Part shown: positions 6,602 through 37,114 of the stretch, piece by piece
How the letters are laid out: every line of letters starts with the position of its first letter
How positions within the stretch are numbered: position 1 is the first letter of the stretch
Source of the DNA: Obrimoposthia wandeli
Lineage: Eukaryota
Length of the DNA stretch: 64,000 nt
NCBI GenBank assembly: GCA_977020255.1
Contig: CDROCS010000506.1
Coordinates: 1,054,001 to 1,118,000, forward strand
Direction: 5' to 3'
The notes under the pieces: model-generated
The model's database searches: none
What the model was told of the DNA's origin: nothing
The model's input: only the letters and a program-made list of their open reading frames with translations
Position numbers and translations under genes: made by a program

Positions 6602-7249
6602 CTACATGCTTGTAGTTTCTGTTGAGGTATTCATTCCTGATGCCAAATAAGGGATCACTTTTCGGATTAGCCCCTCGACATCAATATCTTGATTAAAATC
6701 TGCTTTAGCAATATCCATCAATGCGCCACTCGAACCCATCGTAAATACTGCCGTACCCAAGGTAAAATGTAATCGCCAGAATAGTTCTTGCGATGACAAC
6801 GCTGGGTTCGCTTTCAATAAAGCCTTAGTTATGTTTGCTAAGACTTCACCGTAATGCGTTGTTGTGTACCAACGTAAATGCCCTTGTTCATCGGTATAGC
6901 TTCGACCAAGCAATTGCATAAAGATCACGGTACCATTTTTACTTTGTTGTTCTAACGCTAATAGCGGATCAACAAAACTGTTAAACACATCTAATAACGA
7001 TGGCTTTTCAGCTTGCGTGCATAAGGCTGTTAATTTCTCATTCAGTAGGGGCATGAAGAGTTCGAGATGTCGGGCTATAACGGCCTGAATCAATTCTTTC
7101 TTAGAACCAAAATGATAATTAACTGATGCCAAATTCACACTTGCTCGTGTAGTTATCAAGCGTAAAGAAGTATCTGAAAACCCGTGTTCTGCGAACAAGC
7201 TTTCGGCTGCATCTAGAATGCGAGTTTTTGTATCCAACTTACTAACCAT
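6602..7249 (-). CDS. psrA: TetR-family fatty-acid-degradation regulator PsrA
   Basis: RILDAAESLFAEHGFSDTSLRLITTRASVNLASVNYHFGSKKELIQAV closely resembles the Pseudomonas PsrA N-terminus. It is upstream of fadE and has PsrA-like boxes in its promoter. Confidence 0.85.
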   Translation of the reverse strand: MVSKLDTKTRILDAAESLFAEHGFSDTSLRLITTRASVNLASVNYHFGSKKELIQAVIARHLELFMPLLNEKLTALCTQAEKPSLLDVFNSFVDPLLALEQQSKNGTVIFMQLLGRSYTDEQGHLRWYTTTHYGEVLANITKALLKANPALSSQELFWRLHFTLGTAVFTMGSSGALMDIAKADFNQDIDVEGLIRKVIPYLASGMNTSTETTSM

Positions 7250-9063: not shown

Positions 9064-9360
9064 GGTCAACTCCCTTTTGCTTACTCACTGTGTTAACTGA
9101 TTATTATATTTATCATGATTAAGGCGCTATAACCGCCTCAACCTAGTTAACAATAAGATATGTGGTTCTCTGAATCTGCCTCTATCATACCTTTGCTGAT
9201 CACTTCTCTCCACTAAAAATGCGCTAAATCCATACTAAATAACAACAGCAGCACAACTTTATAGCAACACCGTTTTCGTTTAGTGCAGTATATCGTTCAA
9301 GATTAATCGCCCTAATTGTGATAATCTGCGCGCATCAAAATTTAGGGATATGCTGTACTA

Positions 9361-10797
9361 ATGAAATCACTTGTAATAAAACCCATTGCCTTTCCTAGCA
9401 ACGGCATTCACGCATTTTTTGCCCCGCTAAGTCATGCCCCTTGGTCAATTTTACTCGAGTCAGGATCAGCGGATCACATCGATAGCCGCTTCCACATTAT
9501 TGTTGCCGAGCCCATAGCTACTCTGGTGACAGAAGATACCCAAACCACCATTAATCAAGCCAGTGGTCAAACAGTCACTCATGACGATGCATTTACAGTA
9601 TTACAAACTCTGAATCAACAGCTCATCGGTGAATTACCCTCGCAGCCCCTAGATATAGAATTACCTTTTATTGCCGGTGCACTCGGTTACTTTGGTTACG
9701 ATCTCGGTCGTAATATCGAAAACATTGGTAATACAGCCAGCAATGATTTGCACTTCCCTGATATGGCCGTTGGTCTATACGACTGGGCTATTGTTGTTGA
9801 TACTCAATCTCAGCAAGCGTGGCAGCTCCAATTTAGTGACAACGCCGAGCAAGCTTGGCAACAACGTCATGATTGGTTGCTTGAACGTGGTATAGGCCTA
9901 GCTGTAGTAGGCCAAGAAATTGTAGACCAAGACATTGCGGACCAAGCTGCAAAGCAAACGTCCACATCTGCCTTTGAACTACAAAGCAGCTGGCAGTCGA
10001 ATATGTCAGAACAGGCATATCATCAAAAATTTGCGCAGATACAAGCCTACTTACGCTCGGGTGATTGCTACCAAATTAATTTAGCTCAGCGCTTTAACAA
10101 TCAATATCAAGGTGATGAATGGCAAGCTTACTGCACCTTAAGTCAGCATAATAAAGCGCCCTTCTCGGCATTTATGCGCTTAGAACATCAAGCCGTATTG
10201 TCTATTTCACCAGAACGTTTTATCCAAGTGAAAGACGGCGATATTGAAACTAAACCGATTAAAGGCACGCGCCCACGTAGCCAAGATCCACAAATTGACT
10301 TGGCCAACGCACAAGCATTAAAAGTCGCCGAAAAAGACCGCGCTGAAAACGTCATGATCGTCGATTTATTGCGAAATGATATTGGAAAAATTGCCGTCCC
10401 TGGATCAGTCAGCGTACCCAAGCTATTTGATATCGAAAGTTTCCCCGCAGTACATCATCTTGTGAGTACCATTACTGGTAAGTTACCTGCAGATAAACAA
10501 CCGAGTGAATTATTACGTGCTTGCTTCCCAGGAGGCTCTATCACTGGCGCTCCTAAGGTTCGTGCGATGCAAATAATTGAAGAATTAGAGCCACATCGCC
10601 GTTCACTTTATTGCGGTAGTATCGGCTATTTATCTGCACATGGGCATATGGATACCAGCATTACCATTCGCACATTATTGTGTGATAGTGGTGAAATATA
10701 CTGTTGGGCCGGCGGCGGTATTGTTGCAGATTCGGTTGTCGAAGAAGAATATCAAGAAACATTTGATAAATTAGGTAAAATATTACCTATACTTTAA
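9361..10797 (+). CDS. pabB: Aminodeoxychorismate synthase component I
   Basis: SGDCYQINLAQRF, SISPERF, TKPIKGTRPR, KDRAENVMIVDLLRNDIG, FPGGSITGAPKVRAMQII. Confidence 0.95.
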   Translation: MKSLVIKPIAFPSNGIHAFFAPLSHAPWSILLESGSADHIDSRFHIIVAEPIATLVTEDTQTTINQASGQTVTHDDAFTVLQTLNQQLIGELPSQPLDIELPFIAGALGYFGYDLGRNIENIGNTASNDLHFPDMAVGLYDWAIVVDTQSQQAWQLQFSDNAEQAWQQRHDWLLERGIGLAVVGQEIVDQDIADQAAKQTSTSAFELQSSWQSNMSEQAYHQKFAQIQAYLRSGDCYQINLAQRFNNQYQGDEWQAYCTLSQHNKAPFSAFMRLEHQAVLSISPERFIQVKDGDIETKPIKGTRPRSQDPQIDLANAQALKVAEKDRAENVMIVDLLRNDIGKIAVPGSVSVPKLFDIESFPAVHHLVSTITGKLPADKQPSELLRACFPGGSITGAPKVRAMQIIEELEPHRRSLYCGSIGYLSAHGHMDTSITIRTLLCDSGEIYCWAGGGIVADSVVEEEYQETFDKLGKILPIL

Positions 10798-10890
10798 ATT
10801 AACCATTCCGTATTTTAGTTAGTGAGGCAGCATTAATCAGTGGCTGCGCTAAATTACGTAGATTCAACAGCATAAGTTGCAGGGACGCAT

Positions 10891-11460
10891 ATGGATATTA
10901 ATTCGTTAACTTCACGTTTTGTACTATCACCAAGTGAGCAGCCAATCAGTAAACTGACTAAAGTATTTACCCCTGCAGCCGTGCTCTTTCCCATTGTTGA
11001 ACGTGAAAAACAGCTCAACTTGATACTCACTCGACGGGCATCACATTTACGCCATCACAGTGGTCAAATAGCATTACCGGGTGGTAAAACTGAAAAAACA
11101 GATAGTTCATCGATTGCTACTGCATTACGTGAAACCCATGAAGAAATTGGTATTCCTGCCGACAAAATTACCGTATTAGGTACCCTGCCTAGCCGCCCTA
11201 CGATTAGCCGTTATTATGTCACGCCAGTTGTTGCCTTAGTTGACAGTGACTATCAGTCTAAAATTGATCCGAATGAAGTCGACGAAATTTTTGAAGTGCC
11301 TTTAGCTTTTTTACTTGATGATGATAATCATATTATTGAAAAGAGTTTATTTAAGGGGAAATATCGTGAAGTGACGTTTATGCCTTGGGGTAAATATCCT
11401 ATATGGGGAACGACAGCGGCAATTATCAAAGATTTTTCTAAACATATTAGATCGAACTAA
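10891..11460 (+). CDS. nudL: Nudix CoA pyrophosphatase
   Basis: LRHHSGQIALPGGK...ALRETHEEIG Nudix box and IWGTTA, downstream of pabB as in enterobacteria. Confidence 0.88.
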   Translation: MDINSLTSRFVLSPSEQPISKLTKVFTPAAVLFPIVEREKQLNLILTRRASHLRHHSGQIALPGGKTEKTDSSSIATALRETHEEIGIPADKITVLGTLPSRPTISRYYVTPVVALVDSDYQSKIDPNEVDEIFEVPLAFLLDDDNHIIEKSLFKGKYREVTFMPWGKYPIWGTTAAIIKDFSKHIRSN

Positions 11461-22149: not shown

Positions 22150-23310
22150 TCAGTTCATCACCTTAGGCAACAAGCGTAATAACTTAAACGCTTCAGGCAT
22201 ATTCGCTTGTGTCACCACAAACCCCATTAATATCTCATCACGATCAAACGCCTTTGCCGTCATTCCCGATGCAGTCAATTCAACTTGCCAACGCGAGTCA
22301 CTGGCCGTGGTATTACCGCTTAGTTGTATTGGAAATAACGGCGTTTTCACTTTAACTAACATTGCTGGAAACATCACCTCGGTCACCGACCCTGTGAGGG
22401 TTTTCGCTAACGCATTTGCACTGAGTATGATTGGTTGTAAAAACGCTAAGTGCTTACCGTCAATCTCAGCACAATCACCAATGGCAAAGATATGTGGATC
22501 ATTTGTGCTTAACTGTTTATCAACCACAATACCGCGATTAACGACTAACCCCGCATCATTTGCTAATGCCGTGTTAGGTTTCAAACCTGCTGCACATAAC
22601 ACGCTATCAACCGTAGCTGTATGCCCATTTTTAAAGCGAACCACAATACCAGTCTCTGTTTTAGTCATGCAGCTGAGTTCATTACCCAGTTGTAACTCAA
22701 CGCCTTGCCTTCTCATCGTTTGATAAAGCTGAGATGACACAAATTCAGGTAATAAACTTGGTAATAATGAATCCGCGCGATCACTTAATATCACCTTATA
22801 ATCGGCAATGGCTAAATCCATCGCGATTTCAGTCCCCACTAAACCCGCGCCAACCACCAACACAGATTTAGCCTGCGCCAATTTATCTTGTGACTGCTGA
22901 TACTCCTCCAGACTATTCAAGGTAATAATGTCTTTAGCCGCATCACCATCAACAAAAGGCACAAATGATTGCGCGCCAGTTGCCAGAACTAAACTTTCGT
23001 AGGCTATTTCGGTCCCCTGACAACTCACCGTCTTTTCGGTGCGATTAATGCCATCAACACTGGTATTTTTCATCAAGGTAATATTGTGCTCAGCCGCAAA
23101 GTCAGCACCGCTTTGTTTGACCATGTCTTGTGCCGTGAGTTTTTTACTAAATACATGGCTCAATTCTGGCTTAACGTAATCATCACCACTACCCGCTGTG
23201 ATGACCATTATCGCTTGTTGCTGATTTGCACGACGGATTGATTTAACTAATTGATAGGCAGCAAAGCCACTACCTATAATGACAATACATTTTTCATTAG
23301 CATCAATCAT
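22150..23310 (-). CDS. norW: NADH:flavorubredoxin reductase
   Basis: [58 protein letters not shown]. Overlaps the norV stop by 4 nt. Confidence 0.93.
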
Positions 23311-24890
23311 GCTACCGCCTTCTTGGTTTTTATTTCTTCAAATACATCCTTACCTAAACCACATTCAGGGCAAAGGAAGTACTCAGGTACATCTGACCAT
23401 GCTGTACCAGGGGCAACATCTTGATTCGGCTCACCTTGCGCGGGCTCATAAACCCACTGGCAGACAGTGCATAACATCGAACTATTTACATCGACATCAC
23501 TACCAATACCAATACCAATACTAATACCAGCATCAAACTGGACAACCGGATTTTCTGGTATCGACTTTGCTACTGATTGTGGTTGTGGTTGTGATTGTGG
23601 TTGTGATACAGGTTCTTGTGCTACTTGTTCAGGAACCGTTTGATTTGCAGCAGGTGCAGATACATCAGCAGTAGGCGCGCTTGTTAGTGCCCACTCTCTG
23701 GCAATCATGCGACCGTATTCACGGCATTCCAATATTGCTTTACCGTCTGGTCGCCACTTAGTTTTAAGACTATCGAAGCGTTCAAAACCAGCGTCGTCAA
23801 GGCGGCTTTCAATACGGTCAATAGCACCGCCATTCCAACCATAACTGCCAAATGCAGCGGCTTTTTTATTTTTAAAACGTAAACCAGTGATCTCTTCAAG
23901 CATGCCAGCGACTTTCGGCATCATTACATTATTCATTGTCGATGAACCAACTAACACCCCTTTAGAAATAAAGGCATTAGATAAGATTTCGTTTTTATCA
24001 TGACGTGCGACATTAAATACTTTCACCGCAACCTGACTATCAACCTCATGGATACCTTGGGCAATCGCATCTGCCATCATCCGGGTATTATTCGACATGG
24101 AATCATAAAAAATAGTAATACGGTCTTCTTGGTATTTATCAGCCCACGTTAGATATTGCTCAATAATCTGAATTGGGTTGTCACGCCATACCACACCGTG
24201 CGCCGTTGCAATCATATCAACAGGTAAATTTAAGCTTAATACTTCTTTGATCTTGGCAGTAACTAATCCACTGAATGGCGTAAGAATATTGGCATAATAA
24301 CGTAGGCACTGATCCATCAACTCTTTAGTATCAACTTCATCATTGAATAAACGTTCATCGCAATAATGCTGACCGAATGCATCGTTACTAAACAGCACTG
24401 CATCACCAGTCATATACGTCATCATGCTATCAGGCCAGTGCAACATCGGCGTTTCAATAAACACTAACTGCTTGCCATTACCCAAATCTAAGCTGTCACC
24501 TGTCTTCACCACATTGAAATTCCAATCTGGCTGGTGATGATGACCGACAATTGAATCGATGGCATTTTCGGTACAATAAATTGGTGTATTCGGAATTTTA
24601 TTTAACAATGCAGCGAGCGCACCTGCGTGGTCTTCTTCTGCGTGGTTAATAACAATGTAATCAATTTTGTTAAGGTCAATTTCTAATTCTAATTGCTGGA
24701 TAAACTCGTAACAAAACTTGTGGTCAACTGTATCGATCAATACCGTTTTTTCTTCTTGAATTAGATAACTATTATAACTTGTGCCTTTCTCAGTTTTAAA
24801 TTCAGTGCCGTGAAAATCACGAACTTCCCAATCACGCTGTCCAACCCAAGAGATATTATTTTTTACATGTATAGTCATTTTAAATTCCAA
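23307..24890 (-). CDS. norV: Anaerobic NO reductase flavorubredoxin
   Basis: HAEEDH metallo-beta-lactamase motif, HWPDSM, flavodoxin domain, and C-terminal rubredoxin CTVC...CPECG. Confidence 0.95.
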
Positions 24891-24927
24891 TTAAACAATA
24901 ATAATAAATTTTATATACCTCTTTAAT

Positions 24928-24943
24928 TGCATGTAGCGTGCCA
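24928..24943 (-). promoter_or_regulatory. sigma54 -24/-12 promoter of norVW
   Basis: The minus strand reads TGGCACG-CTAC-ATGCA, against consensus TGGCACG-N4-TTGCW. Confidence 0.85.
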
Positions 24944-24986
24944 AAAGTTAACCTGTTGATTTAATAGTATATAACAAAACATGACT

Positions 24987-25041
24987 GTCATAATGACTAC
25001 CTTTACACATTGTCATTATGACTATACACTGTCGATAAGAC
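24987..25041. promoter_or_regulatory. Three NorR enhancer boxes (GT-N7-AC)
   Basis: GTCATAATGAC (24987-24997), GTCATTATGAC (25012-25022), GTCGATAAGAC (25031-25041). Confidence 0.88.
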
Positions 25042-25051
25042 AGTATTTTAT

Positions 25052-26620
25052 ATGATGATCACCATGCAACATGATACTAAAGACCTTATTCATATCGCCT
25101 TAGACTTAACGACTAATATCTCCAGTCAAGATCGCTTCGAGCGCTTACTCACCACCATGCGTAAACTATTTAATTGCGATGCATCAGCACTGCTAGAGTT
25201 TAAAGGGCAGCACTTCAAACCCTTAGCTATTAACGGCCTAAGCGCAGATGTACTAGGTAGGCAATTTAATATCAGCGAACACCCTAGATTAGAGGCAATA
25301 GCCAGAGCGGGTGATGTCGTCAGATTCCCAGCAGACAGCGATCTGCCCGACCCTTATGATGCCCTTATTACTTCGCATCAAGGTGATTTGCATGTGCATG
25401 CATGTGTAGGCTTACCCTTAATGGCAAATCAACGCCTGATTGGTGCTCTTACTATCGATGGTTTTAATCCTAACCAGTTTGATAACTTCAGTAATGATGA
25501 GTTACGTACCGTTAGCGCACTCGCGGCAGCGACTCTGAATATTGCATTATTGATGGATAAACTGGAAAAAGTCGCTGGCACCATGACCGAGTCAGATCCA
25601 GCCACACATCAACCACAAAGCAACACTGAAATTATTGGTCAATCAGCGCAACTCCAAGCCTTAAAAAAAGAAATCAGCGTTGTAGCTAGCACCGACATGA
25701 CAGCGCTCATATTAGGTGAAACAGGTGTTGGTAAGGAATTAGTCGCCACGGCAATCCACCAGCAATCGTCTCGAGCAGATAAACCCCTGATCTATCTTAA
25801 CTGCGCCGCATTGCCTGAATCTATCGCTGAAAGTGAATTATTTGGCCATGTCAAAGGCGCCTTCACGGGCGCTATTAGTAACCGTAGCGGTAAATTTGAA
25901 TTAGCCGATAAAGGCACGCTGTTTCTTGATGAAATTGGTGAATTAACCCTGACGTTACAAGCCAAACTATTACGGGTATTACAATACGGTGACTTACAAC
26001 GTATTGGTGATGACCGTAATTTAAAAGTCGATACCCGTATTATTGCCGCAACCAATAAAGACTTAAAAGAAGAGGTACTTGCAGGTCGATTTAGAGCAGA
26101 TCTTTACCATCGCCTGAGTGTATTTCCTATAATGGTATCGCCTTTACGTGAACGCGGTGAGGACATTCTATTATTGGCTGGTTTCTTTATGGAACGCTGT
26201 CGCAGCAAGTTGCAATTAAGCCATTTAAGTTTAAGTACTGCTTGCCAAAATACACTGATGAGTTATCCATGGCCGGGGAATATTCGCGAATTAGAACACA
26301 GCATTAATCGCGCAGCTATTCTCGCCAAAGCAGAAGCTAAAGATGAATTGGTCATACTACAACCTGCACATTTTAGGATTGATAATGTGAACGTTGGGCA
26401 CTCACCATTTGAAGTAACCGATGTGATTAACCAACCGACTCTCACAGTGACCAATATGCCCGTGGATAATTTACGCGAGGCTACCGAACAATTTCAACGG
26501 CAGTTAATCACTAATGCACTGCAAGAAAATAATAATAACTGGGCTGCGACAGCACGCCAGCTTTCTATCGATGTGGGCAATCTACACCGTTTAGCTAAGC
26601 GAATAGCATTGAAACAATAA
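25052..26620 (+). CDS. norR: NO-sensing sigma54-dependent activator NorR
   Basis: GAF domain (VHACVGLPL), [32 protein letters not shown]-terminal HTH. Divergent from norV. Confidence 0.95.
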
Positions 26621-26664
26621 AGTTAGCAAAGTAAAAAGATAAAACAGAAAAAACAGAAAAAATA

Positions 26665-26708
26665 AAGGCCGCACATTTCTATTAATAAAATGTACGGCCT
26701 TACTTTTT
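26665..26708. terminator. Terminator-like hairpin between convergent norR and the Ig-lipoprotein gene
   Basis: AAGGCCGCACATTT...AAATGTACGGCCTT followed by ACTTTTT. Confidence 0.65.
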
Positions 26709-26736
26709 GTCACTGTAAATTCAACTAAATGATGCG

Positions 26737-29700
26737 TTATTTCATCGGCTGAGAAAGCTGTTGCAGTGACATATCACCCGGTTCAATGGTAAGTGTCATA
26801 CCTGCGATTTCTCCAAACCACGACAATATTGGCAGGTCTATTTCCATTTCAACACCAAGTGTGATCGCATCTAAATTACTCAATTCAATATTCATACGAC
26901 CATCATCTAAAAACGTCAGCGGTCCTTGTAAATTAGCCCTAATAGGATAACTGTGTAGATTATGAATAACTAGGCCTCCTAATACGCTCATGTAAGGATT
27001 ATCCATATAGATATCTAAATCAATTTTGAAATTGAGCCTACCTTCTTCCTCATTCCAAATAATATAACCCGTTGGTACTTCTGTTTTACCATATTGATCT
27101 ACCGGATAAAGAGGACGCATAACCATGGTGCCAGTTGGTACATTTGAAGGATATAAGCCTACAGGAGGTATAAGGCCAATTTGAGGAGTGCCAAGCATAG
27201 CGGCGACATTCACACTCGAAGATATTAATTGTTCTGCATGGATTTTTACTGGAATACGATTATTAACAGCATCGTACTCACCTACTTCTGTTGGCATAAA
27301 ACCGCTGATGAAAGTTTTAGCATAATCATCACTACAGGTTTGATCTAGCTGACAACCAACTGTTGCTCTAACTAACGCCCCACTTGTATCGAGTAGAGAT
27401 AATTTGGCAAAATTACCACTGATCACCTCTTCTTTTATATCATCCCAGCGATAATCACGGTTGGTATCGGACGTTGGCATCATCAGAGGATTAAACACTA
27501 AGTTATCAGTCGGTGCAGCACGGAATGGCATTAACATATTCGGACCACCTTGGTCTTCATGGGTATCCGCTATTAATAAGCTTGTTTGTAAAGGATAACC
27601 CTGAGCACTACACAGTACATTACCAGTAGAGCAATCTACTTCACCTTTAGTTGCCCCTTCTGCTGAAATTAAAGAATAACGGTATACATTTGAACCTTGA
27701 TCTTGCCAGTTATCGTTTGGTGAAAATGTTAAGATCTTATTCTCATACTTAAGCACACCAGGAACCGCTTCAATACAGCGATCAGAATCATTCGGATCAA
27801 CAATTTCGACACGGAATGAACCAGTATGACACTCTTCACCTAGACTGATACTCGCTGCATCCATCTGCTGACTGAATGCCACAAAAATATCGCGATCTTC
27901 CTGTAAATTAAATATATTTAATTTTTGATCTGTCGCTAAACCACCAGCACAACGACCAGCAATATCAAGGCTTAAATCAGTATCTTCCATAGCACATGAA
28001 TAACCCGGTACCATACCTTCAACCATTGGCGCTGTATAACGCGCAGCAATCTCATCATGCTCTTCAAACTCTATACCTTGATCTTTGTTTGGAGTAGAAA
28101 AAACTTGTGACAGATAAGCGCTGTTTCCAGCTAAATCTTTAATTGTGCCCGTAACAGTATAAGCGGTTAATGGTAATAGGTTCTCTGTCGGATCAATGAC
28201 AATCGACGCACCATCCTGTGAAACAAAAGAATCAACAGCTACGCCATTTTCATCTTTCAGTATTAGATTTTGCAGTGATGAGAGTTCTAAGGGCTCATTA
28301 TAAGTAATGATAATATTATCACCCGAGCTAAAATGCTGAGTATTCGTATTAGGATAGGCAGAGTGGAATCGAGGTGACAAAACATCAACAGCAGCTTCAG
28401 GTGTTTCAGCTTCAGTATATGATTCCATGTGAAATGATACTTGTGCATAAGCATTATCAACGCCTAAGATCTTCACACCAATTTCACTAACCGCATCAAT
28501 AATCATTGATGCGCCTTCCGTTCTCACGGTGCCCATCAATTCAAGATGCATAATATTCTGACTTAAACCACCATTGGCTTTGCCATTTAACTTTCCGTTT
28601 TCATCATAACCATCGGTAGTCATAGCAACATCCATGAACAGGTGTAGTTGCTTTGGTGCGTATTTATGATCAGAACTGGTGTTATTAATCAAATAACCCG
28701 TGGCATCAGAAATATTAGTCATGCGAATATTGCCGGTATCGAAACCAGTTGGGAATTCACCGCCAACTTTCACTGTTAAACTAGAACTATTTAAAATAGA
28801 GCCTTTACGAATAACCAATGGCGCGGCGTCATCAAAATTACCTAAATTCGCTAATTCAGTCACTAAATCGGAATCAACATAAGTCGTATCGTTACCACCA
28901 ATCAGTACCGATTTAATCGTTACCGCATTGATCAGTTCACCAGAATAAGGTGATGCCTGGTTATTATCATTCATGGTAACGTTCATTGGTTTAAATGCGT
29001 GAACACCAGAGTCCAATACCTTAAAGGTTTTCTCTAAGCCCGTAAAACTGTTACCCGCCATGTCTTTAACGCCATCACTGATGATAAGTTCATAGCTTGC
29101 ATCAATATCAAGATCAACTGCGGGATCAAAAGTGACATAACGCCCTTTAGCAATCAAATCACCGCTAATTTGCTCAGTTGAGCCTACTTTTTGAAATTTA
29201 AACGTATCACCAACCACTAACGTCTTAGTATCAATGTCATTAGTCATGCGTAGACGTAATGTTGTGAACATCGTAAACGGTAATTCATCGCTTGGGAAAA
29301 AACCGTCCGTATCCAAAGCAAAACTAGCCGAATCTTTAGCTAATCGAGTGGTAAAGGTAAGCGGGTCTTGCGCAGTACGCTCTGCAGTCAGTTCAGCATT
29401 ACCATCCGCTTCATTAATTAAACCAATTGCGTAAGTGACGCTGTACTGCTCACCTGCTTTTAGCGCTTGCGTTGGTTTAAAAGCGAAACCATTGGTCGGT
29501 GGGTTTTCTAGGTCAGTCGCAAAACTACCTTCAATCACTTCGACCGATGTCACCTCAACAAGGTTACCGTCACTGTCTGTTAAGCTAAATGCTTGCGATG
29601 CAAAGGTATCTAACGGATGCGAAAACGACAGCAATACCGAAGTATTAACCCCAACATCCGCTTGGCCGTTTGATGGGAATGAATAGAACTCATGGGCGTC

Positions 29701-29877
29701 AAATAAGCTTTGCGCTCGACGTTCAGCTAATGCTGCACGATTTTCTTCAGCGGTAAGCGCGACTACTTCAGCTTGTTCATTTTCTTGTAATTCAACACCA
29801 CAACCAGCAAGCATTATGGCAGAGGTAATAAGACTGTATTTAAAAAAATCGTTAAGCTTAGTGTTAATTATTTTCAT
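26737..29877 (-). CDS. Large lipoprotein with several SbsA/Big_5-type Ig-like domains (AupB-like)
   Basis: Lipobox LAG-C. About four Ig-like repeats (FPSNGQADVGVNTSVLLSFSHPL; YVTFDPAVDL...VKDMAGNS; IIITYNEPL...IKDLAGNS; IFVAFSQQMD...LTFSP) and several Cys pairs. It starts 9 nt after the FadL-like gene. Confidence 0.75.
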   Translation of the reverse strand: MKIINTKLNDFFKYSLITSAIMLAGCGVELQENEQAEVVALTAEENRAALAERRAQSLFDAHEFYSFPSNGQADVGVNTSVLLSFSHPLDTFASQAFSLTDSDGNLVEVTSVEVIEGSFATDLENPPTNGFAFKPTQALKAGEQYSVTYAIGLINEADGNAELTAERTAQDPLTFTTRLAKDSASFALDTDGFFPSDELPFTMFTTLRLRMTNDIDTKTLVVGDTFKFQKVGSTEQISGDLIAKGRYVTFDPAVDLDIDASYELIISDGVKDMAGNSFTGLEKTFKVLDSGVHAFKPMNVTMNDNNQASPYSGELINAVTIKSVLIGGNDTTYVDSDLVTELANLGNFDDAAPLVIRKGSILNSSSLTVKVGGEFPTGFDTGNIRMTNISDATGYLINNTSSDHKYAPKQLHLFMDVAMTTDGYDENGKLNGKANGGLSQNIMHLELMGTVRTEGASMIIDAVSEIGVKILGVDNAYAQVSFHMESYTEAETPEAAVDVLSPRFHSAYPNTNTQHFSSGDNIIITYNEPLELSSLQNLILKDENGVAVDSFVSQDGASIVIDPTENLLPLTAYTVTGTIKDLAGNSAYLSQVFSTPNKDQGIEFEEHDEIAARYTAPMVEGMVPGYSCAMEDTDLSLDIAGRCAGGLATDQKLNIFNLQEDRDIFVAFSQQMDAASISLGEECHTGSFRVEIVDPNDSDRCIEAVPGVLKYENKILTFSPNDNWQDQGSNVYRYSLISAEGATKGEVDCSTGNVLCSAQGYPLQTSLLIADTHEDQGGPNMLMPFRAAPTDNLVFNPLMMPTSDTNRDYRWDDIKEEVISGNFAKLSLLDTSGALVRATVGCQLDQTCSDDYAKTFISGFMPTEVGEYDAVNNRIPVKIHAEQLISSSVNVAAMLGTPQIGLIPPVGLYPSNVPTGTMVMRPLYPVDQYGKTEVPTGYIIWNEEEGRLNFKIDLDIYMDNPYMSVLGGLVIHNLHSYPIRANLQGPLTFLDDGRMNIELSNLDAITLGVEMEIDLPILSWFGEIAGMTLTIEPGDMSLQQLSQPMK

Positions 29878-29886
29878 AAGACCGCC

Positions 29887-31251
29887 TTAAAACTTAGTCG
29901 CGAATGAAAGTGAAATAGTTGACACTGTGCCTTCCAATTCAACTGAAGAGTTATTTGCGCTATCTTGATGCGTGATAGTGTGGTCTGTTGGATCAAGTAC
30001 TTGTAACTGATACGCTAGGTCAATCTGCCAAGGGTAAGCCGTTAAACCCGTACCTTTATGAAAATATGATATGCCCGCACCAACAACCAATTTATCAGCA
30101 CTTAAGTAGTTCACATCCAATGTTGCTTTTTCTGGGTCTAATGGTGATACCTCATAACTTGCACCCGCCATTATTTTCACTGTGTCGCTAAAGTTAAGTT
30201 CCATACCCGCGCGTGGAATGATGATATCTTCAAAGCCAACACTAGCTTGGTCTTTCACCGTGTCGTTTAACATCAATTCATTTAAATCAGACCAGTTTTG
30301 TTGCTCTGCACTGAAAGCAAAACTAACCATGCCCGCTTTAATACGCACACCAGCAGAAATGATATCTGGCTGATATGCATCATACGTTAATAGATTAATC
30401 GGTAAGTCCGTCACTGTTTGAGTAATTGTGGCAGCCGCTTTAATGTTTGCTTGACCATAACTCTCGCCACGGAAAGCTGCAGCAAAAGTAATACCATTAC
30501 CCGAGCAAGACGTATCGCTGCCGCACATCATTCGACCTAAATCTAAGGTGATACCCGCTATTGGGGTAATCACAGGTTCAGCCGCAATCGCGACACTTTC
30601 ATTACCCGCTGCCGTACCATCGAGTTCACTTTCTAAATTCATCGCCGCATCAGCATGCAAAGAGACTTGCGCACCACCACCAATCGTTAAACCAGGTACA
30701 ATTTGGATTGAACCCGACGCTGCAACAAACAGTGGTTTCTCACCATAATTAGCTAACTGACCAGTCTCTGACGTGGACGAACTAAATGCCATCATCTCGG
30801 TACCGTAATTCTCAATACCAGCAATCAAACCAAAGTAAATTGGGTAAGAAAAATTGAACAGATTAGTGACATTAACATTCATGCCAGCAAGTATTGGTTG
30901 CGTTGCTTCATCAAATGTTTGCTCTCCGGCAGTAATATCAGGTGTTGCTGATAATAAACCAACATACATCTCACCTTTGCCTGCAGTGGCTAGCGCAGAT
31001 GGATTGTAATACGCTGCTGATGATTGTGAATTGAATAAAGAGAAAGATTGAGCAGAGGCAATATCAACAGGTGATAAACCAAATGTGGTGCCTAAATTAC
31101 CCATACTAGCCTGAGCCGTACCCGCTGACAGTGCTAATGCAACTGATACAGAAAGTAGAGAGATATTGTTAGATATTTTTTGGGTAGACTGTGTTTTGGT
31201 AGACAGTATTTTGTGAGACGGTATCTTCTTAGTCATTGGTGCTAACTCCAT
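29887..31251 (-). CDS. OmpP1/FadL-family outer-membrane transporter (AupA/FilD-like subfamily)
   Basis: Signal peptide, mature N-terminus ASMGNLGTTFGLSP, YYNPSAL (NPA-like motif), amphipathic beta strands and C-terminal Phe (LSFATKF). Alternative start at 31236. Confidence 0.8.
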   Translation of the reverse strand: MELAPMTKKIPSHKILSTKTQSTQKISNNISLLSVSVALALSAGTAQASMGNLGTTFGLSPVDIASAQSFSLFNSQSSAAYYNPSALATAGKGEMYVGLLSATPDITAGEQTFDEATQPILAGMNVNVTNLFNFSYPIYFGLIAGIENYGTEMMAFSSSTSETGQLANYGEKPLFVAASGSIQIVPGLTIGGGAQVSLHADAAMNLESELDGTAAGNESVAIAAEPVITPIAGITLDLGRMMCGSDTSCSGNGITFAAAFRGESYGQANIKAAATITQTVTDLPINLLTYDAYQPDIISAGVRIKAGMVSFAFSAEQQNWSDLNELMLNDTVKDQASVGFEDIIIPRAGMELNFSDTVKIMAGASYEVSPLDPEKATLDVNYLSADKLVVGAGISYFHKGTGLTAYPWQIDLAYQLQVLDPTDHTITHQDSANNSSVELEGTVSTISLSFATKF

Positions 31252-31575
31252 TTAGCGAAACTAAAATAAGTATTCTCTAGTGGCTCCAGCCACAACAACG
31301 GAATACCTTCAAATTGTTGAACTTAATTAAACATATCCAAATGGACACGTTGTCATTTCTGGGGATAAACATACCTTAATTGCCCTACTCAATGCCGTGC
31401 ATAAATCTATTTACGGCATCATTCAGACACTAATGAGCTAAAAGCATTAACTGTAACTTAATACCTAGTTTTAAACTTCCGACACTGACTTAGTTATTCC
31501 AATTTACTTAGTGTTTATACTCAAACAACATGAATAGCATCACTTAAATGATGAAACCGCAGCATCGATTGCCTC

Positions 31576-31640
31576 GTCATCTTGGATATTTTCTAACATT
31601 GTCATTTTTCGTCATTATTGATACTTAACTTGTCATTTTG
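31576..31640. promoter_or_regulatory. Phased GTCAT direct repeats upstream of the pdsO-like gene
   Basis: GTCAT at 31576, 31601, 31611 and 31632 (the last three spaced 10 and 21 bp), mostly followed by T-tracts. Confidence 0.45.
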
Positions 31641-31721
31641 TTGGCAGTAAAAAGCCTTTATTGGTTGCTTTAATAGAGTCATAGCTTGTTAAGCAGTCTT
31701 ACATCAATAAAGGAACTGACC

Positions 31722-32474
31722 ATGAAAAAATCTATCTTCGCAAAAACATTACTTATTACGTCAATCGCATGTACGAGCATCTCTGCAAATGCAGCAGAAC
31801 AAGAACCATTAACGGCTTGGGAAAAAGCAGGGGTATTTTCATCGACAATTATCGTCGGCACCATTGCTGGCGGCCCAATTGGTTTAGTACTTGGTGTCGC
31901 GGCGGGTGATTGGATTAATAACACGTGGGATAAGTCGATTGAATCTGACCAGTTGATGGTTGAAAATCAGCAAATGACAGAGAATTTACTTGCCAGTGAA
32001 TTACAAAATAATCAGCTGCAACACGATGTATTAATTTTGGATAAACAAATTCAAAACATTTCTGAAACCGAAGAAGTAAATCAACAACTGGTCATGGATG
32101 CTTTACAGCTCGACCTATTGTTTGCAGTGAATCAAAGTGCGATAGATAACACCAATGAAGCACGATTAATGCAAATAGCCGATTACCTAATTGAAAATCC
32201 AAGCATCAGTATCGTCTTGTCAGGTCATGCAGATCCAAGTGGTAAAGAAGAATTAAACGAAAATTTAGCCCAACAAAGAGCCGTCGCAGTACAAGATAAA
32301 CTCGTTGCGTTTGGTGTAAATGAATTAAATATTCAAGTACATTCGTTTGGTGCAGATCTCGCAAGTGCAAAACTAGGTGAGTTAATTCAATATCCACGCG
32401 ATCGTAAGGTCAGCGTCGAGTTCATCGATAATTTAGCAAATGAAAACGCTGCTGAAATGGCGATGCAATTATAG
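31722..32474 (+). CDS. OmpA-domain protein, PdsO-like (sortase-system-associated family)
   Basis: Signal peptide, glycine-zipper segment IVGTIAGGPIGLVLGVAAGDWI, coiled coil and OmpA_C domain (LSGHADPSG...NENLAQQRA...FGA...DRKV). The AAGGA RBS precedes ATG 31722. Confidence 0.75.
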   Translation: MKKSIFAKTLLITSIACTSISANAAEQEPLTAWEKAGVFSSTIIVGTIAGGPIGLVLGVAAGDWINNTWDKSIESDQLMVENQQMTENLLASELQNNQLQHDVLILDKQIQNISETEEVNQQLVMDALQLDLLFAVNQSAIDNTNEARLMQIADYLIENPSISIVLSGHADPSGKEELNENLAQQRAVAVQDKLVAFGVNELNIQVHSFGADLASAKLGELIQYPRDRKVSVEFIDNLANENAAEMAMQL

Positions 32475-32779: not shown

Positions 32780-32835
32780 ATTAACAAACTGTTTTGAAAG
32801 CATATGTAATAAATACTTCAATGACGGGACGTAAC

Positions 32836-33861
32836 ATGAATAATAAATTTAAATTAACATTACTCGCTACCAGCACAATACTACTAACTGCATGTGGAAG
32901 TGGCGGTTCAAGTAGTAGCGACGCCAACAAAAACAATAAAACAACACCACCGAATACTAATAGCTCAGTTATTTTTGAAGATGGAATACAAGCTATCCGC
33001 CCAGGCTACACCCCTTTAAGATTAAACATCGTCAACTTACGTCGTGAACCAGTAAAGTTTACGATTGGCCAGCCTACCGCTGGCAGCAAAAACGGCGAAT
33101 ATACAAAATACATAAAAAGCGATTTAGCCGAAGCAAGTGACAATATGCTACAGACTGAATGGAGAAACGGTAATGACCACAGCATACAAATTAAAAATAC
33201 TAATCTAGACGACCCATTAGATGTCCAAGTTACAGATTCCACTGCAAATATTCCATGGGAAATCAAAGAACAAATTACAACGGGAAATGAAGAGGCTGGT
33301 CACATACTCATTTTACCTAGTGCTACCGATATTGATGGTCAAGTACCAGTGGCATTTATCGAAGGTAATCTTGATTTTGATGAGCATAGAAGCGAAGGTC
33401 AAATCAGTTTTGTTAATCGCTTTCAACATTCAAATCTGTCTGAAAGTGAATCTAACATTTGCTTAGCAATGATGGATTATAATGGCAAGGTAGCATCGGT
33501 TGAAGACAACCTTGCTCAATCCGAAGCCACCGAGTTGCTCGATAGTACCAAACTAGGTCTGGAATCGATGAGAAGACTTGTTGTAGTGACGAATACGACA
33601 CTTAATCCTCAGAAAGAAATGACTGATTTAACCGGTTTACAGTTGCAAGCCATTAATAATGCCTGCCCAAATCATGAAGTTACTAACGGCGATAACATTC
33701 AGGTCATTTATATAGGCGTACAAATGGACACCATGATAACAGATATTATTTATAGCCCGGAAGATGGGGAGGTAGCACGCTTTGAGCGCTCGGCGACACT
33801 ACCTTCACTAAAATGGGAATCTGAGATCGACTACCAAATAACTCCAAATAACCTTAAATAA
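32836..33861 (+). CDS. Hypothetical lipoprotein
   Basis: MNNKFKLTLLATSTILLTA-C lipobox followed by a GSGGSSSS linker, with a GGGA RBS before ATG 32836. The mature part has no recognisable family. Confidence 0.8.
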   Translation: MNNKFKLTLLATSTILLTACGSGGSSSSDANKNNKTTPPNTNSSVIFEDGIQAIRPGYTPLRLNIVNLRREPVKFTIGQPTAGSKNGEYTKYIKSDLAEASDNMLQTEWRNGNDHSIQIKNTNLDDPLDVQVTDSTANIPWEIKEQITTGNEEAGHILILPSATDIDGQVPVAFIEGNLDFDEHRSEGQISFVNRFQHSNLSESESNICLAMMDYNGKVASVEDNLAQSEATELLDSTKLGLESMRRLVVVTNTTLNPQKEMTDLTGLQLQAINNACPNHEVTNGDNIQVIYIGVQMDTMITDIIYSPEDGEVARFERSATLPSLKWESEIDYQITPNNLK

Positions 33862-33887: not shown

Positions 33888-33916
33888 AAGCGCGTTGTTA
33901 ATTCAACGCGTGTTTT
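33888..33916. terminator. Hairpin between the convergent lipoprotein and regulator genes
   Basis: CGCGTTG-N6-CAACGCG then TGTTTT. Confidence 0.6.
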
Positions 33917-35348
33917 AGTTTTCAGCCTTTTGTAATAAATATTCACTCACTCGATTTAACTTCTTGAGTCGCGGTTTCATTGGATTTGTCTTTAAATACT
34001 TTTTTGCCAAAAAATAGGTTAATGCTTTTTTCACACGAAAAAAAGAAACCTGTTTAGTTGACAGCAACAATTGGTTAGCCCTGTTGAAATCACCTGATAA
34101 TGCATAAGCGACCGCTAATTTCAAACGCGTATCAGCAAGTTTATCTGGTAACCCCTGCTGTAAATATTCAATTGATTTTTGTAATGTTTGCGCATCTTCA
34201 TTCTTGGTATATTGATTTAATAATACTCGCCCATAAGCACCAAATACCAAGGGGCAATCTTGATTACAACTTTCAGTTGATTGCGCTAATTTAGTTACAA
34301 ACTCAGAATTGTCTTCAATGTCCTGGCTGTACGCCAATGCAGTTAACTGTAACCTGTCCATCGATTTAGTCGGATCATGAGGTTTCTTTAAATTAGCAAA
34401 CGCTATCGCTAACACCCTCTTTTTATTCTCACTGCTTGTTAGCCTATCCAACAACTGCAACAATAAATCATCTAATTCCCCATCAAGCTGATCAAAAGAG
34501 AGTGATTTAGTGGTCAGTTCAATATCAGCATTAACGCCATCAATAACCAAATTCAGTTTTAACATGTTCCCGGAATACCGCAAAATAGGTTTTATTTCTA
34601 TGACTTGGCTACGATCAAACTGATAACTCTCAGGGCAAATTTGTTTTGCGGCGGGGGTAGAACATTCAAAGTGCACATCTACATTTTCCCCTGCAAACGA
34701 ATTCTTCAGCCCATAAAACAAAAATCCAGATAAAGCATGGCTGATCGGGTCAGCAGGGATCTCACCCGAACGTGTGATAATTAAAGCCGGAGATACGACG
34801 ATCGTTTTATTACTTTTTGGCCATACCGAGATACCGAAAGCAGTCGCTATAAGGAACAAAACAATACTATAACCAATAAACTTAATGCTCATCTTTGGAT
34901 ATTTTTTTAACTTTGTAGACTGGGTATCTAACGCTTTATTATTTTTAGGGCTAATATTTTTTGAAGATGAAGAAACTGCCTCATCAACAGATACCGTTGA
35001 GATACTGCTTTCAGGAAAACTAACTAGTCCGATAAATGAGTAACCTTTACGTGGATTCGTTATAATCATTTCTGGTGACTTAGTGTTATCACCTAATAAT
35101 TTTCGTAATTTACTTATGGATTGATTTAGTGAGTTTTGAGTCACAACCATATTTGGCCAAACGGCTTCAAATATTCGCTCTCGAGAAACAATATTACCCT
35201 GTGCACTAACCAGCAAAAGTAATAACTGAATCAATTGCGGCTCAATTTTTTGTACTTGTTGATCTTTGCTGATAGTTTGCTTCTTTGGATCAATAATCAA
35301 GCTATTACCAATATAAAACAATCGAGGATTTTCATACAGCGCAATCAT
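33915..35348 (-). CDS. ToxR/CadC-type membrane-anchored winged-helix transcription factor with a large periplasmic domain
   Basis: IEPQLIQLLLLLVSAQGNIVSRERIFEAVWPNMVVTQNSLNQSISKLRKLLGD...IITNPRKGYSF (OmpR-type wHTH), a Ser-rich linker, one TM (FIGYSIVLFLIATAFGISVW) and a helical TPR-like C-terminus. The start is uncertain (35348/35387/35450). Confidence 0.85.
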   Translation of the reverse strand: MIALYENPRLFYIGNSLIIDPKKQTISKDQQVQKIEPQLIQLLLLLVSAQGNIVSRERIFEAVWPNMVVTQNSLNQSISKLRKLLGDNTKSPEMIITNPRKGYSFIGLVSFPESSISTVSVDEAVSSSSKNISPKNNKALDTQSTKLKKYPKMSIKFIGYSIVLFLIATAFGISVWPKSNKTIVVSPALIITRSGEIPADPISHALSGFLFYGLKNSFAGENVDVHFECSTPAAKQICPESYQFDRSQVIEIKPILRYSGNMLKLNLVIDGVNADIELTTKSLSFDQLDGELDDLLLQLLDRLTSSENKKRVLAIAFANLKKPHDPTKSMDRLQLTALAYSQDIEDNSEFVTKLAQSTESCNQDCPLVFGAYGRVLLNQYTKNEDAQTLQKSIEYLQQGLPDKLADTRLKLAVAYALSGDFNRANQLLLSTKQVSFFRVKKALTYFLAKKYLKTNPMKPRLKKLNRVSEYLLQKAEN

Positions 35349-35640
35349 ATACAGTCTCTGTAGAGCAGGTAAAATAGGGGGATGCATTATATACTCAAAT
35401 TTACTAAAAATGCGAATGTAGCGTGGACATTCAAGACACATAGTCACCATTTATATCGAGTCTATAACTCTTTTAAAAACTAACATCTCCTTGTTCTATA
35501 CTGAAATAGCCATCCTAGTATATTTAAATAGTATTTTATGATCTAAGTAACAGTTTACTAGCCCCAACTAAGTATATTTAAAGGTGTAGATACATTACTC
35601 GCGACTACTTGTTAGTCCCATTTTAACCAGGAGCTTCATC

Positions 35641-36072
35641 ATGACCATTAACAACATCCTTTGCCCGACCGATTTTTCAGATACGGCAAATAAAGCGATA
35701 AACTACGCTGCAGAAATGGCAATCATACATGATGCTACCTTGCATTTGGTCAGTGTCATTAATGAGATCCATGGCTTCGATAGTTTTCAAGTGCTCGCTA
35801 TTACACCAAGTGATATTCACGAACATATGCTCAAGATTACTCAAGAAAAGCTGGATGAACTTACTACAGAACTCAAACCAAGCTTGCCACGACATACTGC
35901 GGTACTAGAAGGACACCCATCAACAGAGATCGTCCAAGCGGCTGTCGACTTTGATTGCGACATGATTGTTATTGCTAGCCATGGTCGTACAGGTCTAGAA
36001 CATATCTTAATAGGAAGTGTGGCAGAATCGGTTACCCGTCATGCGCATTGCCCAGTATTGATTGTCAAATAA
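35641..36072 (+). CDS. Universal stress protein
   Basis: ILCPTDFS, DMIVIASHGRTGLEHILIGSVAESVTRHAHCPVLIVK. Confidence 0.93.
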   Translation: MTINNILCPTDFSDTANKAINYAAEMAIIHDATLHLVSVINEIHGFDSFQVLAITPSDIHEHMLKITQEKLDELTTELKPSLPRHTAVLEGHPSTEIVQAAVDFDCDMIVIASHGRTGLEHILIGSVAESVTRHAHCPVLIVK

Positions 36073-36127: not shown

Positions 36128-37114
36128 CTATTTAGGCGTAAATTCATTAAACCAAGCCGGTATACGCTCTTCTAACCAATACTTTGGTTTTAATATTGAA
36201 CCATAGACAAAACCAACATGACCACCGTAGCGGCTTAACTCAAATAAAATATTATCTGACATGTCTTCAAGTTTAGGGATCACTTTTTTGGTTAAAAACG
36301 GATCGTCCTCGGCATGAATAAATAAGGTCGGCGTTTCGATTTTATGTAAAAACTGCAAACTGCTGCACTGGCTATAATAATCTAATGCATCTTTAAAACC
36401 ATGCAACGGCGCCGTAACGCGATCGTCAAATTCAACAAAGGTATTAAGCTTTTTCACTTGCTTGGTGGTCATATCTAACGCTGAACGCATATCTAGATGT
36501 TCAAATTTACGCACCACACTGGCTTGTAAACGTTTAATCAAGCGACGTTGGTAGGCTTTTGAAAAACCTTTCTTAATCCGCTCTGCACTTTCTGCTAGCA
36601 GTAATGGCGCAGAAACAATTGAAGCAGCTAATAACTGCGATTTTGTACCTGTTTGAGCTAAATAATGCGTTAACACACTGCCACCCAGTGAATAACCAAT
36701 CGCGAATAACGGCGCATTAGGATAACGTTTAGCCATCAAACCAATCACATAACTTGCATCGCTGGTATCACCAGAATGATAAGCGCGTAATAAACGATTC
36801 GACTCTTCGCTGCAACCACGGAAATGCATCACCAAACCAATCCAACCTGCCGCAGTCACCGCTCGCATGATACCTTTTACATAAGGGGATTCGACAGAAC
36901 CTTCCAAGCCATGAAATATGATAACAATCGGTTTATTATTTTCAGCGGTGGGCAAGGCTGTCCAAGCCAGATCAAGAAAATCACCATCTTCAAGTTCTAG
37001 CCTTTCACTAATTGTCGGTAATTTCAGATTACGGCGGCTAATCGTTGGCAACATCGTTTGTAAATGCGCATTACGGATCCACCACTGGGGCTGAAATTGA
37101 CTCGGTTGAAACAT
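36128..37114 (-). CDS. yheT: YheT-family alpha/beta hydrolase
   Basis: RNAHLQTM, DGDFLDLAW, FHGLEGS, GYSLGG nucleophile elbow, DDPF, GGHVGF. Confidence 0.88.
   Translation of the reverse strand: MFQPSQFQPQWWIRNAHLQTMLPTISRRNLKLPTISERLELEDGDFLDLAWTALPTAENNKPIVIIFHGLEGSVESPYVKGIMRAVTAAGWIGLVMHFRGCSEESNRLLRAYHSGDTSDASYVIGLMAKRYPNAPLFAIGYSLGGSVLTHYLAQTGTKSQLLAASIVSAPLLLAESAERIKKGFSKAYQRRLIKRLQASVVRKFEHLDMRSALDMTTKQVKKLNTFVEFDDRVTAPLHGFKDALDYYSQCSSLQFLHKIETPTLFIHAEDDPFLTKKVIPKLEDMSDNILFELSRYGGHVGFVYGSILKPKYWLEERIPAWFNEFTPK

Follow-up and report, generated by a model that had tools for sequence, protein, structure and literature searches.

The 64,000-nucleotide stretch analyzed here, hereafter the window (Obrimoposthia wandeli assembly GCA_977020255.1, contig CDROCS010000506.1, positions 1,054,001 to 1,118,000), carries on its minus strand two co-oriented open reading frames (ORFs) that resemble the aupA-aupB operon of Marinobacter. 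The upstream ORF (29887-31251, minus strand, 454 amino acids from its first ATG) encodes a predicted outer-membrane barrel of FadL fold, and the downstream ORF (26737-29877, minus strand, 1046 amino acids) a large lipoprotein; the two are separated by 9 nucleotides (nt). A first-pass annotation, made from the sequence alone, had proposed a two-gene module in this place. Both ORFs are indeed present, as are all the features that it quoted, namely the barrel segment ASMGNLGTTFGLSP at residues 48-61, YYNPSAL at residues 81-87, the last residue Phe (numbering of the 454-residue ORF), and the lipobox MLAG-C26 of the second protein. Chance ORFs are excluded because hundreds of homologues exist and the AupA model of NCBIfam matches the barrel over its full length with E 3e-107. 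The GC content is uniform over the region. The true start of the aupA-like gene is most likely the second ATG, at 31236 (MTKK..., gene 29887-31236, 449 amino acids), since it has GGAG 9 nt upstream and since the first ATG (31251) falls inside the loop of a conserved hairpin (HP2, described below). The signal peptide ends in ...AQA; if it is cleaved after this triplet, following the A-x-A rule, the mature barrel would begin with SMGNLG rather than ASMGNLG. A terminator-like hairpin of 15 pairs followed by a T-run (26665-26701, minus strand), which lies 36 nt past the stop codon of the aupB-like gene, is the predicted end of the two-gene operon. Together, the gene order, the 9-nt gap, the terminator after the second gene, and the tight pairing of the same genes at 89 other loci show an arrangement in which both genes would be transcribed as one unit.

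By sequence comparison, both genes code for true homologues of AupA and AupB. In BLASTP searches, the barrel aligned end to end with the protein named AupA by NCBI in Marinobacter (38% identity over 433 residues, E 4e-99), and the lipoprotein aligned collinearly with the 1051-amino-acid AupB (residues 65-1046 against 37-1045, 28% identity, E 2e-89). The Marinobacter reference locus consists of the 445-amino-acid NCBI-named AupA, a 13-nt gap, and then the 1051-amino-acid Big_5 protein with lipobox LAAC. The AupAB-like identity that had been proposed for the module thus holds for both proteins over their full length. Neither of the outcomes that had been named as contradicting it was found: the lipoprotein has the AupB homology just given (E 2e-89), and the barrel matches no FadL or FilD model. 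The equivalog model for AupA, NCBIfam NF041571, is the only strong curated-model match for the barrel and covers it from 2 to 444 of 444 positions (358.8 bits, E 3e-107), short of the cutoff of 840 bits. Marinobacter scores 891 bits with this model, Bermanella 492, and P0082, a deep relative in the Moritellaceae clade, 296; judging from these scores, the cutoff appears in practice to be specific to Marinobacter. We regard the pair in the window, from the similarity of both proteins, as a diverged Moritella version of Marinobacter AupA/AupB, and so as a known kind of system.

The operon of Moritella was in fact already on record. A genome survey reported aupAB in 76 genomes, four of them Moritella, and Table S2 of that study lists one aupAB tandem each, with 0 alkB and 0 ahpG, for M. 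dasanensis ArB 0140, M. marina ATCC 15381, and M. viscosa, and one tandem with 1 alkB and 1 ahpG for Moritella sp. PE36 (Mounier et al. 2018, mBio, PMC5989066). Because the window proteins are 73-95% identical to their M. dasanensis counterparts and 88% identical to those of M. marina, the window carries, as far as such identities tell, the very orthologs catalogued in 2018. The occurrence of the module outside the known hydrocarbon degraders, which the first-pass annotation had put forward as new, was therefore pre-empted by Table S2; it is visible there (three of the four Moritella have neither alkB nor ahpG), and the paper does not discuss the point (PMC5989066). In the literature on AupA after 2018 we found citations only, with neither structural work on the pair nor work on Moritella. 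The published model is not overturned by the present results. What is new here are modest details: the breadth of the family, the domain plan of the lipoprotein, the structured leader with GGA loops, and the recombining distal half.

Structure prediction and profile comparison show the barrel as having a 14-strand FadL fold with a conserved N-terminal hatch. The top 24 matches of its AlphaFold model (predicted local distance difference test, pLDDT, 82.5; predicted template modeling score, pTM, 0.80) among PDB structures are FadL, TodX, TbuX, and CymD, with template modeling (TM) scores of 0.43-0.60, the best of them (FadL, TodX, and TbuX) at TM ~0.6, with E 1e-14 for the top FadL/TodX matches. 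A family profile built from 30 sequences matched 3DWO (the Pseudomonas aeruginosa FadL homologue, 1.7e-14), TodX (2e-9), and Escherichia coli FadL (2e-8) in the PDB, the match to 3DWO taking in the NPA block of the hatch, where the window barrel has NPS. The conserved hatch segment (SMGNLGTTFGLSP...YYNPSAL) is nearly invariant. A sequence search of the PDB with the barrel alone returned nothing. Pfam Toluene_X (PF03349) gave nothing even at E<=1, whereas Marinobacter AupA scores 52 bits with it (cutoff 29.7); the NCBIfam models for FadL and FilD (NF050080) gave no match at E<=0.01, and the PorV model none either. BamG is the only other model that the barrel matches (E 1e-3, 17.9 bits against a cutoff of 250). 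Among 1.84 billion representatives, phmmer retrieved 213 proteins at E<=1e-3, of which 39 reached E<=1e-30; with so few relatives, the barrel belongs to a small, divergent, and separate subfamily with FadL fold. Some database records label its relatives as long-chain fatty acid transport protein. The remotest members of the family show weak similarity to the models of PorV/PorQ, BamG, and FilD, all barrels of FadL fold that act together with partners. The first-pass annotation had mentioned Acinetobacter FilD as a related barrel in a putative pilus locus. The description agrees with NF050080, where FilD is a "putative pilus system OmpP1/FadL family transporter"; the window barrel has no match to that model. 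A literature search for FilD, FadL, and Acinetobacter found no paper, and Pfam and NCBIfam scans of the window proteins found no pilus or type IX secretion genes nearby.

The aupB-like lipoprotein (lipobox Cys26) is shown by prediction to be a lipid-anchored, all-beta protein with 3-4 disulfides and the domain order Ig1-Ig2-betaA-Ig3-Ig4-C-terminal domain. All its segments are given on the minus strand. After the signal peptide and lipobox (residues 1-26, ...MLAG-C, 29800-29877), the protein continues into Ig-like repeat 1 (residues ~63-178, 29344-29691), which matches Ig2 and Ig3 with an hhalign probability of 96-98% and has a weak CopC-like match, and Ig-like repeat 2 (residues ~183-290, 29008-29331). 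The beta-A domain follows (residues ~294-490, 28408-28998), then Ig-like repeat 3, which is the best Big_5 match (residues ~500-598, 28084-28380), and Ig-like repeat 4 (residues ~615-740, 27658-28035), with the cysteine pairs C628/C643 and C683/C701. The C-terminal beta domain (residues 741-1046, 26740-27657) holds the pairs C749/C756 and C842/C848. Pfam finds Big_5 in three stretches of the lipoprotein (E 7e-32), and the "about four" Big_5-like repeats noted beforehand proved to be four: comparing slices of a 25-sequence alignment as profiles, hhalign relates the four Ig-like repeats to one another with probabilities of 75-98%. Beta-A (~200 residues) and the C-terminal domain (~300 residues) are unrelated to each other and to the Ig repeats, and no Pfam family matches either of them. 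Across 103 family members, beta-A is the most conserved part of the lipoprotein, and its ratio of nonsynonymous to synonymous substitution rates (omega) is 0.04-0.06.

The same 103 members bear on the disulfide pairs that had been claimed for this protein, since their cysteines are conserved or lost as pairs: C628/C643, C749/C756, and C842/C848 are conserved in >=98% of the family, and C683/C701 is gained or lost jointly, being present in 47% of the family and in 100% of the Moritella clade. Such pairs fit an oxidizing, extracytoplasmic location, to judge from the sequences. The lipobox Cys, conserved in 97% of the members, is usually followed by Gly-Gly-Asp/Gly/Glu/Ser and, in the window, by Gly-Val-Glu (+2 to +4). 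The structure model of the lipoprotein (pLDDT 79, pTM 0.77) is almost wholly beta, with a disordered stretch past the lipid anchor and then one short helix. A whole-chain Foldseek search with this model returned generic multi-Ig/FN3 matches only, with TM ~0.1; the fold matches include S-layer proteins, and the sequence profile gave only marginal matches to the Ig domains of CopC and TssM among solved structures. Over its whole chain, the modeled AupB-type lipoprotein appears to be without structural precedent in the Foldseek search, which makes the structure of the pair informative.

The two halves of the lipoprotein gene seem to have had different histories within Moritella. For the greater part of the region, M. 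dasanensis ArB 0140 has the sequence nearest to the window: nucleotide identity is 93% in the barrel gene, with 0.30 synonymous substitutions per site (dS), and 85-95% in the neighboring norR and norV, and dS is 0.45-0.72 in the half of the lipoprotein gene that codes for the N terminus. From ~28,650-28,350 to the stop codon, nucleotide identity to ArB 0140 drops to 57-67% and dS reaches ~1.8, with a protein identity of 63% in Ig3-4 and 55% in the C-terminal domain. JT01 and DT_65 keep 75-83% nucleotide identity to the window over this distal stretch. The mosaic region spans 26740-28650 of the window (minus strand; positions 8001-11120 of the loci compared, L004-L008), and here the window belongs to the allele class of JT01 and DT_65. 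The trees of the barrel and of the lipoprotein conflict within Moritella, in line with the mosaic pattern. These comparisons indicate that Ig3, Ig4, and the C-terminal domain form a recombining allelic cassette, with at least two old allele classes taking part in the exchange. As an explanation of the variable half, positive selection was considered as well and is rejected, for omega stays below 0.25 in every segment (0.05-0.08 in the barrel, 0.09-0.22 in the C-terminal domain) while dS jumps. With the lipid anchor at the N terminus, the half that varies lies distally in the protein, and this cassette may be the part that determines specificity or is exposed.

Upstream of the barrel gene, a stretch of ~100 nt (31241-31345, minus strand) is nearly identical in six Moritella species, and the remaining intergenic region diverges. 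Still further upstream, TGACAAnnTGTCC and a GCTTTTAGCTCATTAGT block are conserved as well. Two hairpins, both on the minus strand, lie in the leader. HP1 (31280-31293, GUGGC-UGGA-GCCAC) exposes GGA in its loop. HP2 (31241-31256, GCUAA-AUGGAG-UUAGC) holds in its loop the Shine-Dalgarno sequence GGAG (31246-31249), 9 nt before the ATG at 31236. In four deeper relatives (L085-L088), HP1 takes the forms GCGAC-AGGA-GUUGC, GUAAC-UGGA-GUUAC, GUAAC-AGGA-GUUGC, and GUGAC-UUGGAU-GUCAC. All the alignment cells of HP1 pair (100%), three of its five pairs change on both sides, none of 500 shuffles reaches the observed score, and in slid registers the paired fraction falls to 10-51%. With a small sample of 7 distinct sequences, the covariation support for HP1 is good, not overwhelming, and it concerns HP1 only, HP2 being invariant in 10 of 10 Moritellaceae sequences.

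The two GGA loops lie ~37 nt apart, and that of HP2 overlaps the Shine-Dalgarno sequence. Two GGA motifs in hairpin loops, one of them covering the ribosome-binding site, are the architecture of the targets of CsrA/RsmA, such as glgC and hcnA. This likeness suggests that the leader is a candidate target of post-transcriptional control of the Csr/Rsm type. An Rfam scan of 26500-31800 at E<=1 returned only a chance-level match of a small RNA over the terminator, and placed the leader in no known RNA family. A scan for the sigma-70 consensus upstream of the barrel gave 11 sites against 15.7 expected and no convincing promoter, and no sigma-54 match was seen by eye in the leader. GGA-loop hairpins are not enriched upstream of the barrels outside Moritella (21 of 89, against 18.3 expected), a result that rules out a leader common to the whole family; the GGA-hairpin leader appears to be specific to Moritellaceae.

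To place the pair within its family, we used a scan of one genome per species with a single peptide pattern, which returned 94 AupB-like loci; the pattern misses Marinobacter, and the list of taxa is thus incomplete. It comprises five Moritella species, Bermanella, Oceanicoccus, Mangrovitalea, Saccharospirillum, an Ectothiorhodospiraceae isolate, metagenome-assembled genomes (MAGs) of Moraxellaceae, and many Alcanivorax/Alloalcanivorax. In the scanned loci, barrel and lipoprotein genes form 89 pairs, whose members lie a median of 11 nt apart (range -1 to 49), and very few AupB-like genes lack an upstream barrel where enough upstream DNA is present (L035, L070, and L078). Alcanivorax loci often hold two or three tandem pairs, and in three loci of Bermanella/Oceanicoccus (L009, L011, L012) a second AupB-like gene directly follows the first, with no barrel of its own. 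The pairing persists in remote metagenomic relatives: L084 has a 422-amino-acid barrel, a 12-nt gap, and a 913-amino-acid Big_5 lipoprotein, and in L082 a truncated partner begins 3 nt after the barrel. The partners in the two loci are AupB homologues (hhalign E 3e-49 and 4e-51), each with a lipobox. Because of this persistence, the module of barrel and AupB-like protein is older than the marine oil degraders and reaches beyond them.

In the barrel tree, Moritellaceae form one clade with a Shimodaira-Hasegawa-like approximate likelihood ratio (SH-aLRT) support of 100 and a stem of 1.19 substitutions per site. This clade makes a trichotomy with the Bermanella/Oceanicoccus clade and a large Alcanivorax/Marinobacter clade that holds the characterized AupA. 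The lipoprotein tree agrees, with the Bermanella clade as sister of Moritellaceae. In five species representatives of Moritella, the locus lies between norRVW and a block with Usp and hydrolase genes, and the Usp/hydrolase side is kept also in four deeper metagenomic relatives. The pair of Moritellaceae is therefore best described, on phylogeny and gene order, as a deep, monophyletic, and syntenic lineage, which argues for vertical inheritance; monophyly, the long stem, and the synteny conserved in about ten Moritellaceae contigs rule out a recent horizontal acquisition from an oil degrader. One MAG labeled Desulfobacteraceae (L030) carries an AupAB pair that nests among gammaproteobacterial sequences, and its label is probably a binning error rather than a sign of transfer.

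The downstream neighbors of the module are NorR, NorV, and NorW, and the upstream ones a divergent OmpA-like gene, a small lipoprotein gene, a CadC-like regulator, Usp, and a YheT-like hydrolase. The nitric-oxide detoxification unit norR/norV-norW (22150-26620) is complete and adjoins the module; it is syntenic in all the Moritella loci and is not beside the module in other genera. As parts of the system, norRVW, the OmpA-like gene, Usp, and the hydrolase were rejected, since they are chromosomal backbone within Moritella only and do not accompany the module in other lineages. Between Usp/OmpA-like and the barrel lies a hot-spot of variation. The window has there a small lipoprotein of no recognized family (32794-33861, plus strand) and the CadC-like membrane regulator (33915-35450, minus strand), both absent from the five other Moritella loci, and JT01 has EAL-domain and DicA-like genes. 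A 357-amino-acid lipoprotein with an HxHxDH-like motif (weak Lactamase_B_2, E 0.002) immediately precedes the barrel gene, in the same orientation, in L005 (5307-6380) and also in L006, L007, L008, and L088; it is not found in the window, JT01, or L085-L087. In PE36, DT_65, and a third relative (L006:1918-3369, L008:1992-3434, and the contig of P0080), the hydrolase and Usp genes are separated by a gene for a cytochrome P450 of ~480 amino acids, located ~3 kb upstream of the module, and this gene may be the ahpG counted for PE36 by Mounier et al. (PMC5989066). It is absent from the window, where Usp (35641-36072) adjoins the hydrolase (36128-37114), and also from M. dasanensis. At ~20 kb from the module, 4248-7249 holds a FadE-type acyl-CoA dehydrogenase beside a TetR repressor of PsrA type (fatty-acid degradation control). 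Two ORFs at 59900-61339 (plus strand, 479 amino acids) and 61276-62307 (minus strand, 343 amino acids), whose ends overlap by ~60 nt, match no Pfam family at E<=1e-8.

What is known of the function of such a pair comes from M. hydrocarbonoclasticus (nauticus) SP17, where aupA and aupB are one operon, induced by alkanes. AupA localizes to the outer membrane and most AupB to the inner one, the two co-immunoprecipitate, and the mutants neither grow on nor bind hexadecane in Brij 58 micelles, with normal adhesion and normal growth on hexadecane vapor (PMC5989066). By homology, the lipoprotein in the window would contact the barrel, and hydrophobic compounds of very low solubility, offered as micelles or aggregates, would be captured by the pair and carried through the envelope. 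The first-pass annotation had suggested wax esters, algal alkanes, PUFA, or sterols as substrates. From the context, and since alkB and CYP153-type genes are missing from most Moritella genomes, the substrate in Moritella would probably not be n-alkanes; surfactant-like compounds, lipid esters, or other amphiphile-solubilized lipids are better candidates. Expression would probably be controlled after transcription at the structured leader, with its two GGA loops, one at the ribosome-binding site, as a target of the CsrA/RsmA type. The distal half of the lipoprotein, whose divergent alleles recombine between Moritella lineages, might set the specificity or be the exposed part. As to the substrate, scans of the window proteins found no alkane hydroxylase in the 64 kb, just as the first-pass annotation had it. 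In Arctic seawater, Moritella rises with the dispersant Corexit and not with oil, and the first parts of Corexit to be consumed are its non-ionic fatty-acid-ester surfactants (Span 80, Tween 80/85) (PMC7580538, PMC10103760).

Taken as a whole, a Moritella relative of aupA-aupB at the ortholog level, serving the envelope uptake of poorly soluble or micellar lipids with a substrate other than alkanes, is to us the best explanation of these data, and we hold it with moderate confidence; uptake of such lipids is probably the function. Several points weigh against it. The Moritella copies are known from sequence alone, and the functional data belong to the Marinobacter pair. The score of 359 bits against a cutoff of 840, together with the stem of 1.19 substitutions per site, leaves room for a possible change of function. 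Gly-Val-Glu at +2 to +4 gives no prediction of sorting between inner and outer membrane. CsrA binding is read from motif architecture alone. The link to Corexit is circumstantial, as it is a correlation at the level of communities, for the genus and not for the operon. Finally, the P450 ~3 kb upstream in PE36 and two relatives makes a link to alkane or fatty-acid hydroxylation possible in some lineages.

This last observation, together with the full-length homology of both proteins to AupA/AupB, the scoring of one alkB and one ahpG in Moritella sp. PE36, and the position of Bermanella, an oil-associated genus, as sister clade, would suit a dedicated uptake of micellar n-alkanes as in Marinobacter, with the hydroxylase encoded elsewhere in the genome. 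We consider n-alkanes an unlikely substrate because neither the window nor three of the four Moritella genomes have a hydroxylase (alkB or ahpG in the latter, and no P450 of PE36 type in the former) and because the genus responds to Corexit and not to oil; the clade is, moreover, deep and long-branched, with a leader that differs from those of other lineages. It is much less probable still that the module is an ordinary FadL transporter of long-chain fatty acids that happens to lie beside an unrelated Ig-repeat lipoprotein. The FadL fold and the database names of some relatives (long-chain fatty acid transport protein) are what one would expect in that case, but the barrel matches neither the NCBIfam model of FadL nor Pfam Toluene_X, its subfamily is small and separate, with 213 members found at E<=1e-3 in the search of 1.84 billion representatives, and the pairing with an AupB homologue is kept at 89 loci over distant lineages, so that this idea is largely refuted.

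A serious rival is that the barrel, following the logic of PorV/PorQ or Slam, is mainly a docking or export partner for a surface-displayed lipoprotein, which would act as a receptor or adhesin for hydrophobic particles, instead of a channel continued by a bridge in the periplasm. The loss of binding of micellar hexadecane in the Marinobacter mutants is compatible with such a role, and Big_5 Ig repeats and S-layer fold matches are typical of exposed proteins, among which a divergent, recombining distal cassette beside a conserved barrel is also a common pattern. The weak similarity of remote family members to the PorV/PorQ, BamG, and FilD models, and the window barrel's own match to BamG (E 1e-3), point the same way, but the similarities to PorV and BamG are far under the cutoffs of these models. 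Most of Marinobacter AupB fractionates with the inner membrane, the nearly invariant hatch of the barrel is as expected of a gated channel of the FadL type, and omega below 0.25 in every segment gives no sign of positive selection. We give docking or export a low probability, and prefer the uptake of poorly soluble or micellar lipids.

Little is understood of how bacteria bring nearly insoluble lipids and hydrocarbons out of micelles or particles and through two membranes, and genetic evidence exists for very few systems, AupAB among them. A conserved copy in a cold-adapted deep-sea genus mostly unable to oxidize alkanes is a natural test of whether such modules are alkane-specific or serve micellar and aggregated lipids generally, and the answer matters for how marine lipids and dispersant surfactants are turned over. 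We tentatively suggest, as a possibility rather than an expectation, that AupAB-type modules are not alkane-specific but an old, general two-part envelope machine, made of a FadL-fold barrel and a giant lipid-anchored beta protein, for the uptake of amphiphile-solubilized or aggregated lipids, and that the Moritellaceae branch was rewired to post-transcriptional control of the Csr type and has an exchangeable distal cassette by which its binding is determined. If this is true, the alkane role in Marinobacter is one specialization of a wider and so far unrecognized system of lipid capture, present also in non-marine bacteria.

Comparison with known systems helps to delimit the pair. The leader resembles the CsrA/RsmA-regulated leaders of glgC and hcnA in its two loop GGA motifs, the second overlapping the Shine-Dalgarno sequence, and it differs from them in that HP2 never varies and no Rfam family matches. 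With PorV/PorQ, BamG, and FilD, the pair shares the coupling of a FadL-like barrel to a large partner protein and, in remote members of its family, a weak model similarity, whereas the window barrel reaches none of their models and has no type IX or pilus genes nearby. FadL, TodX, TbuX, and CymD are similar to the barrel in the predicted 14 strands and N-terminal hatch (TM ~0.6) and in their profiles, including the NPA region (NPS in the window); unlike them, the window barrel escapes single-sequence search and the FadL models of Pfam and NCBIfam, and whereas those proteins work alone, its subfamily is almost always coupled to a giant lipoprotein. From Marinobacter AupA/AupB, the pair is set apart by identities of 38% and 28%, by a score of 359 bits against the cutoff of 840, by a separate deep clade, by a host genus mostly without alkane hydroxylases, by an extra linker with a helix after the lipobox, and by a different 5' leader. 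It nevertheless has the same gene order and tight spacing (9 nt in the window versus 11-13 nt in Marinobacter), both proteins are collinear over their full length, the second carries a lipobox and three of the four cysteine pairs in common, and the barrel has the FadL fold with the same block of hatch motifs.

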